A stretch of 64,000 nt of DNA from positions 79,733 through 143,732 of the forward strand of contig CALSCP010002781.1 of NCBI GenBank assembly GCA_943704425.1, in the 5' to 3' direction. The notes below the pieces were generated by a model. That model was given only the letters and a program-made list of their open reading frames with translations, had not been told where the DNA came from and did no database searches. A program made the position numbers and the translations under genes. Each line of letters starts with the position of its first letter. Positions within the stretch are counted from its first letter, which is position 1. Of this stretch, positions 40,100 through 46,079 are shown piece by piece. The stretch is from Ministeria vibrans ATCC 50519 (taxonomy: Eukaryota > Protista > Filasterea).

Positions 40100-40108
40100 G
40101 AACAATAC

Positions 40109-40164
<56 letters not shown>

Positions 40165-40278
40165 TAATAATAATAATAATAGGAAATAAATAGAGAATCG
40201 AGAGCTGTACTCAATGTCAAAACAAGATAATAATTATATTTTTATTATTAATTTTATTATTATTATTATTATTATTAT

Positions 40279-43200
40279 TCACTTTTCTATCTTCTTGCGT
40301 TGCATCCGCTGTTTCTTTGCGAGATGCTCATACTCGCGCTCGTTTTTCTCATCTTGCTGCTCCATTTGCTCCATCGCATCGTCTAGTTCGTCCTAAGTTG
40401 AATATGTAAATAATATTATTATCAATGAAAACAATTCAATCCGATCAGATTTGTTTCTATTCGTTTTTTGGCCTCCTCTTTTTTTACCAAGGCTCGTTTG
40501 AGCTTTGCACGAACGCCTTGCATCCGCTCACGACTCTCTCGCGTTTGTCGTGACACCAAATTCATGCGTTCCTTGTCCTGGCGCACGGCGAGGCCGTTGT
40601 GACGACGCGACAGAGCCTCGGTTGTACGTCGAAAGTGACGCTTCGTCTCCTCAATCGATCGGCTGTACTTGTCCGCAATCGTCTTGAGAATTCCCGCAAT
40701 CTCCAGGCTAATCAAAAGGCGCGAGACGTTTAGTCATACCATGACCGGTATCCATCCTTGTTTCTTTCCTTCTCTCTCCATCACAAATACGTTTGTTTTC
40801 GCTCGCCTCCTCTAAGTCTTCTCTCACTCTTTCTCTCTACTCGCTCTGCCACTTTGTTCCTCCTCAATTCTCTCTAAGTTAGCCTCTCACCTTGTATCCA
40901 CATCAACAGGCTTTGGTTCGACACTAGTTGTTGTCAAACCGTCCTCAACGTCAAAGTCTTCGTCACCCATGTCGCCGTCGTCGTTGCTGTTGTTGCTGTT
41001 GTTGTTATCGTCTTCCTCCTCCGTCTCCTCCTGCTGACACACAACCTCCTCCTCACTCTTCTTCTGATTCACTTCCTTTTTCAGCTCGACTGTTCGAGTC
41101 GACCTCTTGCTGGCGGTCTTACTCGCCACGACTCGCTCTTCCTCCTCCTTCACCCCCTGCTTCTGCTGTTCCTTCTCGTCGCGTTCCTTTTTGGCGGCAC
41201 GCGTCTTGGTGCGCTCCATGGCCTTGCTGACCGCTGCCTTCTTGGATGCACTTACGTACTTTTTGGGCTTCGTCTTTGCCTCAAGTACCACTGGACAAAA
41301 GGCTTTTTACAAGGCACCTTTGTTTCAAATTTTGCTCTCTACCTTTTGGCGCAACTGGGTGCTCGGACGCCTGCCCTGGGGTGGTGACAAAGTCAAATTC
41401 GTCCACCATCGTCGTCTGCTCCTTGCTCTCCTTGTTTGCGGGCACACTTCCATACTTGGGTGGTGTGTCGTCGACTTTGCTTTTGTTCTTGTTGCTCTCG
41501 TTGACAGTCTCCAGCACACCTTTGCTGCGCTTCTTTGCCGCTCTTTCTTTTCCTTCCGAACGTACCTGTTTTGTTTGTTTGTTTGTTTGTTTGTTTGTTT
41601 GTTTGTTGTGCGTGTGTGTGTGTGTTTTAAAGGCTGTCTCAGTTTTGTCGGCCATTCTTTTTTTTCTGTTTCACCTTTGGCTTGCGCGGCTTGGTTGTCT
41701 CACGTTTGTTCACATTGGCATCATCATCGACAACATCGTTCATTTCGGTTTCCTACAAAGAGTATTTGTTGCTTTTTCTTCTCCTTTCGGCGGTACGAAT
41801 TTTTACCTTGTGCGAGGCGGAGCGAGTGAGACGACAGCTTTGTGTGGGAGTTGTTGTGGTCATTTCTGGCTCCAAACGATGCTGAGCTTCGAGTTCGGTC
41901 ACTTGACTCAGGAGCAGTGCATTGTCTTCGACATCGTCGAGAGCACCCAATGAAAGGCTCTCGAGCAATTGAGCACCGTCCACAACAGCACTGGAGCCTT
42001 TGACGTGTGTCGCATCCAACAGCTCGCCTTGTACACCACTTGTGACCACCTTGGACGGCATGCTTGACTTGACCGAGCGACCACTCTTGAAGAACCACAC
42101 CAGCATATTCGACAGGGCTTCACCTGCTCGACATGTCAAACACAAAGCAAGGCGAACAATGACTTTGTTTTGTCTTACTCTTGCCCTTGAGCACAATGCG
42201 AATATGACTCTTGCTCTCTTGCATGCTGCTTGGAATCACACTGTTGAGCAGTCGCTCGGGCGACCGGTCAACATGAACGTCCACCTCCACCGTGTCATCA
42301 TTGACAACTACATTACATGATTTTTTGATGTTTTTTTTTTCAATTTTTTTCAATTTTTTTCTTTGGGGGTGAGAGAGGAGGGGCTGCGAACGATGTTTTT
42401 GGCGAATTTTTTTTTTATTCGCTCACCTTTGATGGAATATTCGTCCACCAGACGCAACCGAATGGTCATGACACAACCTTCAACCTACATGGTACATGGC
42501 TGTTTGTCACCTGTTTTCTATTTTGGACAGTTGACGACGCACAACAAAAAGCCTTACGGTTGCAGTTGAGTCACTTGACGATTGATCGTCTGGCAGCGCA
42601 ATGAGCAGCGTAAATGAGCGCGACACAAGGTTCATGTCACACCAGAGACCATCTTCGCGAGAGGGCGCTTGGAGGGAACGCTCATTGAGACGCACCTCCG
42701 AGACACGGGCGGAGACAACGCTTCGCGCCGAGCCAGTCGCACTGCCATTGAGTTGCTGAAGAAAACGACGCACTTGTCGGTCAAAGTGTCGCGGCTCAAT
42801 GGCAGCAAAAGCCGTTGCGACAGCCGGCTGCTCAAGTGTGGCCATCGCAAATGACTGACGCATCTTCTTGGTGGTCGTTCGAATCGCAAACTCCGTTGTG
42901 TACCATTGAACAAGCACGTCTTCGAAAGTGAGGAGAGATGAGCGTGGTTGAATGAGGAGGGGCTTGGGGGGAGTTGAAACACTGCATTTTTAGTTATTCT
43001 TCGCATGTGCATTCAAATAACTTTGCTGTTGTTATTGCTGCTTACCACCGGCTGTGGGGAGATTCTTAAAGATTCGTTCCCTACCATTGCAAGTACAACT
43101 CGTGTAAATAACAAGATCATATATTTCTCTCATTATCGTACTGGTACTCTTTGAAAGTTGGCACACCCATCACGAACGTCTTGTTTTCTTTGCATCCATT

Positions 43201-44338
43201 GAGCAGCTCGTTGATCACTCGAAGTGACTGCAATAGTAAAAATAATAGGAAAATAAATAGAGAATCGAGAGCTGTACTCAATGTCAAAACAAAACTATAT
43301 TCAAAACAAAGAACAGATACTAATACTAGTATTAAAACGCGTTCTTCCAGGTGGAAAATGCAGAAGATAACGATGTGACATCATTTTGTTTTGAGCATAC
43401 TTGGGCTTTGACATCTGGGTCTTCGCTTGCGTTGCCACTCGTCTCCATCAGAGTGTCTGTCAGAGTGTGGCACAGGCTTACTTTCACTACACAAAAGATC
43501 GTTTTTTGGATGTTGTCAAAACGAATGCTTAGTAAAAGCGAATTGCAAGAGTACTTGTGCGAGACAGCATTGAAACCTCCTAAGGCGGACCAAAGAGAAA
43601 AATTAATACAATCATCATAGTACTTTCATACAACTATTAATTTTCGTTGCATTTATTCTCATGCGGGGGGGGGGGCTCGTACACGAATCGTGTCAAGCAC
43701 AATAACGGCCATGTTGCGGACTTCGTCTGTACGCTCCACAACATCAATAACAGACCGAAATACACGTTGGAGAGTAGAGGGGAGACTGTGTGAAAACACA
43801 TGAGGGCAGTGAGAGCGTGTTTCGCAACGTGTCGTTTCGTTTTTTTTTTGTTTGTGTTCACCCCGTCTCCACGAGCAATGTGACTGTTTCGTTGGCGAAC
43901 GGCGCTTGTAACAGTCTGAGAATTGCATCAAATGCCACGTATTCTTTGTCGATGAGAGACTGTGCAGGAGTAAAACAATTTTTTTTTTAGACATGTTTCA
44001 AAATCGCGTCGTCGACGCGTTTTTCTGCGTTTGCATTTGGCGCGCTTCGCACTTTTTCCTACCTGCAACAGCAGTCGCTCGATGGTTCGCGAAAATTTGA
44101 TTGAGCAAGTCAAGGAAACATTGTCATTAAGACGATTGAGTCGTCTGGGGATGTCACACAAGTGTAGATAGCCTTCATCGGCAACGAGCGCGTCGGCGCT
44201 CTTGGAAGAAAAAAAAATTATATTATATGTTTCATAATTTCTTCTTTCCGTTCCTACCAGCGCTTCCTTGTTACTCGGCGTTGAACTTGCCAAAGGAGAG
44301 TTGGTGTCAACCGCGTGACCTGTTGGAGTGGCGATCAT
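40279..44338 (-). CDS. SYCP2: SYCP2-like meiotic chromosome-axis protein (ARM-like domain, Spt16M/PH-like domain, disordered middle, C-terminal coiled coil); many small exons
   Basis: Manual splicing gives ...VSLTCSIKFSRTIERLL...LLVETGLP...SLRVINELL...LPTAGDVLVQWYTTEFAIRTTTKKMRQSFA...FAAIEPRHFDRQVRRFLQQLNG...SLQAPSREDGLWCDMNLVSRSFTLLI. This is collinear with mammalian SYCP2 as recalled (AGDYDLQVGITEALCRMTTEKQRQELA...FETDCRIFLNLVNG...FWIDFNLGSQTLSFYI). Coiled-coil exons lie at 40279-40710. Confidence 0.8.
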
Positions 44339-44594
44339 GAAGAAGAGAAGAAAAATAATGAGTAAAAAAAAAAGTTTGATCTAACGGCAATCGGCGGGTT
44401 CGACTTTGGCCTGATGCATATATTCCTGTTGCAGAGTGAAGTCTGTGCAGTCATTCCCAGCGAATAACGATCAGATCTTGGACACAACAGAGACAGCCGT
44501 TTTGGGGGTAATTTCACGGCGGTGAGACAGTAGTGACTTTTCGCCACTTTTATCGAACTTTTATCTTCCTGAATATTCAGTAATATTTCCTGAA

Positions 44595-46079
44595 ATGGAC
44601 TACGAATCGCGACAGACGGCCGACTATCAGTCTGTATGCTTATTGAAGGATGCATACGAGACAGTTTCTGAAGCGATGGAGCGCCATCGCGCGAAAAACT
44701 CGACGCGAGCGCTGACGCTGAGCCACTCCAAAGGATCCGTTGACGGTGCGCGACGGCTGGGCTTCGACATAGCACGTTGCTGACACCCTCTGACAATGCG
44801 TTGTGCAGTCTTTATTTTCAGTGCGTGTAGCTTGCTTGAGCAGTCGCCGCAGTGTCGTTTTCAAGGTTGGCTGAATTTTTACGACAGATTTGAGCGCTGC
44901 GGACGCGTCAACGCCAGTCCTGCCTGACACATGCCTCTGCTGGCCTCTCTCTCTAGCGACACGGCTGTTTAACAGATATATGGAAAAGACTATGACGTCG
45001 GCGCGGCGCCAATTGGAGCGCAACCCCGAGACTTGGTATGTGAGCGTTTCTGCATCATTCTGTTTTTTTTTTTTTTTTTTTTTTTTTCTCACATTTTTGA
45101 GGGTGACTCGTTTTACTATCGTATCGTGCACGTAGCCAACGGCGCATGGCGGCCTTTGCCAAACGTGAAGCATCGTGTGTACTATTGACGGCCGCCAGCT
45201 GCATTCAGCTTGCCAACAAGGTGAAATTGCGGAAACCCTTCAAAACGTTTCGATTATATATAATATAATAAAAATTTCTCGTTTTCGCGCCAAGGTTTGC
45301 ATGGGGACGAGCAAGTGCGCTTCTGGATCAAAAGACATCATAAATGTGCGCACAGTGTACCAATTGCTCAATGGGAGTTGGTCCAAGGAGGAGATTTTGG
45401 AGGTAAGGTCCTTTTTGTGTTTTGTGTGTCGTGATGTTCTGGTCGAAGAACTTGACAAATCTGGATTTGGACTTGGCAGAGTGAATACCGCGTCTGGGGA
45501 CGTCTTGAGTTCAATGCGGTGGTCTATTCAAGTGCGACACTGTTAGACATTCTGATTGAGTACATGGCGTTTCAGGAGGATTTTGAGCTGCCGTTTGAGC
45601 GTGTCACCAAAGTAAGACAACCAAAGACGAGAGTCAAACGACAAACGCCTCTTATATGTACTCACTCACTCACACGATCTCTCTCTGTATTTCAACTGTG
45701 TGTACGTCACTAGACGGCCTGGGTGGTACTAGACCTGATGCACGACATTGCTGACATCCGTGACAACACGATGGTAATGGGCAACGAGGCTCTCATGGCC
45801 GCAAGCGCGCTTCTCACCGCCACCTTTTCCATTGACCGCGACTCTGTTTCCGTCCTTCTCGATCATGGTGCGACCTCCCCCCTCTCGCCCCCCCCCNNNN
45901 NNNNNCCCCTCCTTCTCCCCCCGAAAAAAACGAAAAAAAACAAATCTGACACAACTTTTGTGTCGTGTGTTGCAGTGTTGCCATTGACACACCTGTCGGA
46001 CGTGCTCATGACCGAAGTGTCGAACAGAGTGCTTGAAGAGATGAAGAGAGATCGCGAGCGCGAAGATTGGCCCCAGTGA
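44595..46079 (+). CDS. CNTD1: CNTD1/COSA-1-like cyclin-fold crossover factor; exons 44595-44745, 44809-44865, 44957-45035, 45136-45220, 45295-45402, 45480-45611, 45714-45867, 45976-46079
   Basis: All introns are GT-AG and frame-consistent. Product VFIFSACSLLEQSPQCRFQATRLFNRYM...LLTAASCIQLANKV...SKEEILESEYRVWGRLEF...LDILIEYM...AWVVLDLM...LMAASALLTATF matches CNTD1 as recalled (YQAVEILERFM...SCVQLASKL...TKEELLESELDVL...CLTLLDLVY). Confidence 0.82.
45897..45904. other. Short assembly gap (N run) inside a C-homopolymer in the last CNTD1 intron
   Basis: Literal n characters flanked by poly-C. Confidence 0.95.

Follow-up and report, generated by a model that had tools for sequence, protein, structure and literature searches.

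The window, that is, the whole 64,000-nucleotide stretch of DNA analysed, was confirmed to contain two divergent multi-exon genes with start codons 256 bp apart, at ATG 44338 on the minus strand and ATG 44595 on the plus strand. In both genes the ATG is the first of its open frame and has an in-frame stop upstream, and the modelled introns are GT-AG throughout and keep the reading frame, with lengths of 52-183 nt in the minus gene and 63-108 nt in the plus gene. The locus is laid out as follows:

40279-44338, minus strand: putative SYCP2-type axis-core gene; 17 exons, 2553 nt, 850 codons (850 aa), stop at 40279-40281
44338-44258, 44200-44063, 43959-43862, 43785-43683, 43579-43555, 43486-43401, minus strand: minus-gene exons 1-6 (high to low)
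43227-43142, 43080-43046, 42919-42558, 42484-42427, 42307-42179, 42123-41807, minus strand: minus-gene exons 7-12 (high to low)
41752-41675, 41565-41343, 41290-40891, 40707-40488, 40392-40279, minus strand: minus-gene exons 13-17 (high to low)
44339-44594, no strand: divergent intergenic region, candidate bidirectional promoter; 256 bp, 41% GC
44595-46079, plus strand: candidate divergent cyclin-box protein gene; 8 exons, 870 nt, 289 aa, helical, stop at 46077-46079
44595-44745, 44809-44865, 44957-45035, 45136-45220, plus strand: plus-gene exons 1-4
45295-45402, 45480-45611, 45714-45867, 45976-46079, plus strand: plus-gene exons 5-8
45897-45905, no strand: run of 9 N, an assembly gap in plus-gene intron 7 bridged by a spliced contig

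Evidence for splicing came from contigs of the public RNA-like runs X1, X5, and X6 (three studies), with the DNA-like run X14 for comparison; such contigs register the presence of a transcript and neither its absence nor its level. All seven plus-gene junctions of the model recurred exactly in a single 1311-nt X1 contig; RNA contig support was missing for the first ~110 nt of the plus coding sequence. For the minus gene, eight junctions were present in X1, X5, or X6 contigs (41752|41807, 42123|42179, 42307|42427, 42484|42558, 43486|43555, 43579|43683, 43785|43862, and 43959|44063), and X6 contig ends coincided with the exon edges 40707, 41290, and 41343. The RNA data also revealed a 68-nt intron at 43487-43554 and set the exon 12 acceptor at 42123. 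RNA-like contigs gave no support for minus-gene intron 1, exons 7 and 8 (43227-43142 and 43080-43046), and the exon 9 acceptor, over which one X5 contig was unspliced. Run X14 was unspliced across the same places and contained none of these exon joints. The original prediction of two small-exon genes flanking a gap at 44339-44594, with transcripts using the predicted junctions, was thus borne out by the models and the spliced contigs. Within the spacer, RNA-like contig depth was 0 at 44395-44590 and rose on either side, and small two-copy repeats, possibly of chance origin, were found at 44546 and 44557 and at 44566 and 44587. The two divergently oriented genes would be transcribed independently, and the spacer may be a short divergent promoter region of the kind typical of compact genomes, with shared regulation possible.

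The minus gene was divided into five regions on the basis of similarity, structure prediction, and composition:

43046-44338, minus strand: exons 1-8, ~217 aa, presumed ARM-like N-terminal region, whose length places exon 9 colinear with mouse SYCP2
42558-42919, minus strand: exon 9, 120 in-frame aa, ARM-like domain (last part) and PH/Spt16M-like domain (first part), from its PDB match
41807-42484, minus strand: exons 10-12, presumably the rest of the PH-like domain plus a linker, all junctions RNA-confirmed
40891-41752, minus strand: exons 13-15, charged middle of low hydrophobicity, presumed disordered from its composition
40279-40707, minus strand: exons 16-17, ~110 aa, C-terminal helical, candidate coiled-coil region, from structure prediction and composition

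Sequence comparison showed the minus gene to be clearly related to SYCP2, a protein of the meiotic chromosome axis. The sole PDB match of exon 9 (phmmer, 177,635 sequences) was residues 224-326 of mouse SYCP2 (5iwz_A, E=1.8e-6), and the two proteins were colinear, as residue 9 of the exon, approximately aa 227 of the minus protein, aligned to mouse residue 224. The last ARM repeats together with the PH segment have been described as the best inclusion criterion for SYCP2-type proteins (PMC8131943), and it is over the last ARM repeats and the PH/Spt16M-like domain that exon 9 matched the mouse protein. The Pfam SYCP2_SLD profile matched exon 9 weakly (12.2 bits, E=0.26, versus a cut-off of 26.5) in a single-exon query of domains split over 12 exons; SYCP2_ARLD had no exon-wise match; and AGAO-like_N2 matched exon 9 at E=0.003, under the cut-off of that family. 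Scans of the organism's own genome with the SYCP2_SLD and SYCP2_ARLD profiles gave no match, the controls being equally silent. Exon 9 was single copy with no paralogue in the genome, drew blanks in a homologous-protein search and the ESM Atlas, and when modelled alone by AF2 gave a pLDDT of 36. Exons 1-8 were individually too short for a significant match (exon-wise Pfam; PDB phmmer on exons 2 and 4), exon-wise Pfam and PDB searches of exons 10-12 were empty, and phmmer of exons 2, 4, 11, and 12 against the PDB returned nothing or chance matches. In all, 17 exon pieces of the two genes were compared with Pfam, and nothing matched beyond SYCP2_SLD and AGAO-like_N2 on exon 9 and DUF433 on plus-gene exon 5.

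Beyond the conserved module, exons 13-15 contained 35-50% K/R/D/E and 15-18% core hydrophobic residues. Exon 16 was predicted as one uninterrupted 71-residue helix (mean pLDDT 95), and exons 16-17 contained 0-4% P+G and 40-57% charged residues with a modest heptad signal. A four-copy complex prediction of the C-terminal helix exon, of which no paralogue was detected in the genome, scored 0.01 and carries no weight either way on self-assembly. The SYCP2 match spans only ~100 residues of one exon, and transcripts of the minus gene were present in bulk cultures sequenced by three studies, both of which would suit another ARM/PH scaffold without a meiotic-axis role. However, such an identity is very improbable given that SYCP2 was the only match among all PDB sequences searched and that the domain order and C-terminal helix agree with the published family criterion. 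The SYCP2 homology originally proposed for this gene was hence upheld by the sole, colinear match and the long C-terminal helix. In the preferred reading, the organism has one SYCP2-type protein as its meiotic axis core, the product of the minus gene, in which an N-terminal ARM-like plus PH-like module would be followed by a charged, disordered middle and the long helix. If it behaves like SYCP2, Red1, and ASY3, this protein would associate with the chromosome axis and with HORMAD proteins, and it may self-assemble via its C-terminal helix without a separate SYCP3-type partner.

Other components of the meiotic axis were sought elsewhere in the genome, as suggested along with the original prediction. 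HORMA-domain genes were present at two loci. The expectation of SYCP3 failed: an exon-wise Cor1 scan of the genome, a kind of scan that short split genes can escape, found no SYCP3 gene or paralogue, the best match (E=0.098) not rising above noise. A coiled-coil ORF in L002 was rejected as SYCP3, having a weak Cor1 match and no SYCP3 match in the PDB. The genome is compact at roughly 30 Mb. It carries an intron-split trpB (five exon matches, summed ~437 bits), and the host is therefore not an animal, which confirms the non-animal part of the claim that the DNA came from a tryptophan-prototrophic, non-animal eukaryote.

A transcribed and correctly spliced SYCP2-type gene constitutes direct evidence for meiotic axis machinery kept in a small non-animal eukaryote. 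SYCP2-type ARM-PH-coiled-coil proteins occur in all eukaryotic supergroups and have been inferred for LECA (PMC8131943, PMC6349405), such that the suggestion of animal-type machinery revealing a pre-animal origin is not new, and the animal hallmark SYCP3 was not found. With one SYCP2-type gene and SYCP3 missing from the scans, the axis machinery appears to be in a pre-duplication state. Published work traces SYCP3 to a duplication in the metazoan ancestor, a scenario that the present result matches and leaves unchanged.

The nature of the plus gene was less readily assigned. Both genes were searched as single exons, with plus-gene pieces of 18-51 aa, and the searches were consequently of little power. 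Pfam Cyclin_N matched none of the plus-gene exons, and its genome scan identified 21 other places and not the plus-gene locus. Exon 5 matched DUF433 at E=0.2, phmmer of exons 6 and 7 against the PDB returned nothing or chance matches, and exon 7 was blank in the ESM Atlas. For the C-terminal 84 coding residues (piece 45714-46076), no true relative was found among 1.84 billion representative proteins; the sole match, an ankyrin-repeat protein, was spurious because the matched short motif extends into an intron. Metagenome locus scans for both genes were blank, and exact look-up of six window ORFs found none (0/6) in the searched collection. One feature was detected with a cyclin-box HMM built from the cyclin loci of this same genome:

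45136-45220, plus strand: plus-gene exon 4, weak cyclin-box helix 3 match (own cyclin-box HMM, 5.8 bits)

This weak sequence match was the only positive result for the plus gene. It fell on HMM positions 67-86, the expected place in the cyclin box, and exon 5 aligned next in order. Its score was reached by 0.75% of shuffles (p about 0.01), and the ORF containing exon 4 ranked top of the 1827 six-frame window ORFs at 8.3 bits (E=0.25). Another, non-coding window ORF reached 7.7 bits with the same HMM, above the 5.8 bits of the exon, and every database search of the plus gene was blank, as would be expected of an unrelated, lineage-specific helical protein that is no cyclin and lies beside the axis gene by accident. 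That explanation is nevertheless unlikely, as the exon 4 match sits at the expected place in the cyclin box and at a score that fewer than one shuffle in a hundred attained, and the blank searches used pieces too short to weigh heavily.

A more specific identity for the plus gene, as a CNTD1/COSA-1 orthologue forming a co-induced meiotic unit with the SYCP2-type gene under one bidirectional promoter, and hence a crossover-designation cyclin predating animals, is conceivable at somewhat less than even chances. The size of 289 aa and helical character are compatible with it, as are the helix 3 match followed in order by exon 5, and one study had four runs in which both genes were transcribed. 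Around cyclin-box helices 1, 3, and 5 the plus protein may also resemble mammalian CNTD1, which can serve as a lead. However, none of the exon-wise searches returned CNTD1 or any cyclin, and COSA-1/CNTD1 has been reported as conserved specifically in Metazoa (PMC11077092). Transcripts of both genes were present in X1, but X5 and X6 yielded contigs of the minus gene only, which is not proof of absence, and divergent neighbours with short spacers are in general common in compact genomes. If true, the CNTD1 assignment would move a family described as Metazoa-specific back before animals and would offer a simple unicellular system for crossover designation. Taken together, the locus comprises two divergent genes, probably a single SYCP2-type axis-core gene and one whose 289-aa, mostly helical product would be a cyclin-box protein of great divergence.

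Among known systems, the plus protein resembles CNTD1/COSA-1 in its small size, helical character, weak cyclin-box helix 3 signal, and meiotic gene as neighbour, and differs in having no tool-based match to CNTD1 or Pfam Cyclin_N in exon-wise searches. The arrangement of the locus is like that of bidirectional gene pairs with spacers of <1 kb, given the 256 bp between start codons and the stretch at 44395-44590 free of RNA contigs. With mouse SYCP2 (PDB 5IWZ), the minus protein shares a significant match over the ARM-to-PH junction at an equal distance from the N-terminus. It has the same order of ARM-like domain, PH-like domain, long disordered middle, and C-terminal helix as mammalian SYCP2, which is ~1500 aa compared to 850 aa here, where the genome also had no detected SYCP3-type partner gene. 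Like yeast Red1 and plant ASY3 (PMC6349405, PMC8131943), the minus protein is a single SYCP2-type protein with a C-terminal helix, here a candidate for self-assembly, and the absence of a separate SYCP3 recalls Red1. In contrast to both, the minus protein is closer in sequence to animal SYCP2, since phmmer matches mouse SYCP2 directly.

Stop-to-stop translation of 40279-46079, a region without any long ORF, revealed one series of small coding segments on each strand, for which exon models were made by eye and then verified by coordinates:

40279-44338, minus strand: minus gene (SYCP2-type), ATG 44338 to stop 40279-40281, 17 exons, 2553 nt, 850 codons
44339-44594: spacer, separating the two start codons by 256 bp
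44595-46079, plus strand: plus gene (proposed CNTD1/COSA-1-like), ATG 44595 to stop 46077-46079, 8 exons, 870 nt, 289 aa

All introns of both genes were GT-AG (23/23; 52-183 nt), and in each gene an in-frame stop preceded the ATG, which was the earliest of its open frame. The coordinates and spliced contigs thus bore out the original prediction of divergent small-exon genes. Nine N with flanking poly-C in plus-gene intron 7 (45897-45905) represented an assembly gap leaving the coding sequence unaffected, and tri- and tetranucleotide microsatellites flanked the minus-gene 3' end (40107-40180, 40240-40279) and lay inside one of its introns (41563-41605).

Parts of the window were contained in 16 public sequencing runs, four of which were compared with it: the RNA-like X1, X5, and X6, from three studies, and the DNA-like X14. 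A single 1311-nt X1 contig carried 7/7 plus-gene junctions at the exact modelled positions, while eight minus-gene junctions were present in contigs of X1, X5, and X6, and three more exon edges coincided with X6 contig ends. X14 was unspliced through the sites joined in the RNA-like contigs and therefore the joints derive from RNA, confirming splicing at those junctions. The RNA contigs also revealed a 68-nt minus-gene intron (43487-43554) and placed the exon 12 acceptor at 42123 rather than 42126, using the distal AG of a NAGNAG site and giving one codon fewer. Minus intron 1, minus exons 7-8 (without any contig among those compared), the exon 9 acceptor, and the plus CDS 5' end are model predictions. 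RNA-like X5 and X1 contigs were unspliced over the predicted exon 9 acceptor and exon 6 donor (42754-42974, 43268-43486), which could reflect intron retention, pre-mRNA, or DNA carry-over.

The spacer, the proposed shared promoter, was short (256 bp; GC 41%); small gaps between divergent neighbours are usual where a genome is compact. Among the run contigs compared, no RNA-like contig lay on 44395-44590 and therefore both transcripts begin within or at the edges of the spacer. Approximately half of the sampled words of the window were present in X1-X4 (one study), which fits the presence of both spliced mRNAs; X5 and X6 yielded minus-gene contigs only, and contigs can show neither level nor absence. 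Two small two-copy repeats occurred upstream of the plus ATG, a 9-nt motif 11 bp apart (44546, 44557) and an 8-nt motif 21 bp apart (44566, 44587), adjoined by a 12-nt near-palindrome within 44546-44594; these may be promoter elements or chance.

The minus-gene protein (850 aa) was searched exon by exon, which limits power, and only exon 9 (120 aa) was of sufficient length for sequence search. Its sole match among all PDB chains was mouse SYCP2 (5IWZ, residues 224-326; E=1.8e-6), and SYCP2_SLD from Pfam matched it weakly (12.2 bits). The aligned exon 9 residue was about aa 227 in the model, so the N-terminal part equals that of mouse in length. The matching segment comprised the last ARM repeats and PH domain that, with a C-terminal coiled coil, are the best criterion for SYCP2-type proteins according to Tromer et al. 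(PMC8131943). Exons 13-15 contained 35-50% charged residues, and exon 16 was predicted as a single 71-residue helix (pLDDT 95), for which modelling four copies as a complex pointed neither way on self-assembly. We conclude from the sequence that the minus gene is most probably the organism's SYCP2-type axis-core gene, upholding the SYCP2 homology originally proposed.

Published work already reports SYCP2-type proteins from every eukaryotic supergroup and infers their presence in LECA (PMC8131943; PMC6349405), and therefore the minus gene adds a member to a known family rather than evidence for a newly found pre-animal origin; the "animal-type" and "pre-animal origin" framing was known for this family beforehand. 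The proposed search for axis partners identified HORMA-domain genes at two loci, and no SYCP3/Cor1 gene was found in the genome scan, in agreement with the inferred origin of SYCP3 by duplication in the metazoan ancestor (PMC8131943). A 328-aa single-exon coiled-coil ORF (L002:1213-2199, on genome contig C1674) matched Cor1 weakly (E=0.098) and only lamin-type coiled coils in the PDB, and was rejected as not demonstrably SYCP3.

The genome (29.7 Mb, 2860 contigs) carried trpB as five exon matches split by introns (summed ~437 bits versus a model cut-off of 392), therefore representing a eukaryotic gene of an organism that is not an animal, as anticipated. A dispersed element of ~60-70 bp occurred in minus-gene intron 6 (43232-43300) and just beyond the minus-gene 3' end (40175-40235). 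It had 258 first-look candidates in the genome, 40 of which were scored to give 42 match rows, mostly at 88-100% identity, and very high depth in run contigs, where its flanks varied widely and a single loose end in poly-A was seen among the RNA-like contigs. These features suggest a MITE or SINE-like repeat of high copy number. Several cyclin-box loci were paired across contigs, with similarity judged by eye from the alignment: C2018:45070-45507 and C12:16158-16623 were near-identical, C2215:13336-13647 and C2399:29689-30050 very similar, and C2334:3660-4001 and C1078:3159-3365 more diverged. Such pairs may stem from recent duplication, from haplotypes left uncollapsed in the assembly, or from duplication of the genome; the SYCP2-type gene was in single copy.

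The plus-gene exons (18-51 aa each) were also searched singly, which limits power. Exon by exon, no Pfam family matched at a meaningful level; PDB searches, ESM Atlas, and metagenome scans were blank, and the locus was absent from the 21 places matching Cyclin_N over the whole genome. The stop-free piece 45714-46076 (exons 7 and 8 with the intervening intron 7) had an ankyrin-repeat protein as sole match among 1.84 billion representatives, which was spurious because the short motif extended into the intron. With a cyclin-box HMM made from 20 pieces of the genome's own cyclin loci, exon 4 aligned to the helix-3 region (positions 67-86; 5.8 bits) and exon 5 aligned next in order. The ORF containing exon 4 was the best of 1827 six-frame window ORFs, but at 8.3 bits (E=0.25), with one non-coding ORF at 7.7 bits; the observed maximum was reached in 0.75% of 2000 shuffles of the eight exons. 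This match tentatively suggests that the plus gene may carry a divergent cyclin box and does not address CNTD1 orthology. As a lead only, mammalian CNTD1 may be similar to the plus protein near cyclin-box helices 1, 3, and 5. COSA-1/CNTD1 is reported as conserved specifically in Metazoa (PMC11077092), and therefore a confirmed orthologue in Ministeria vibrans would be new.
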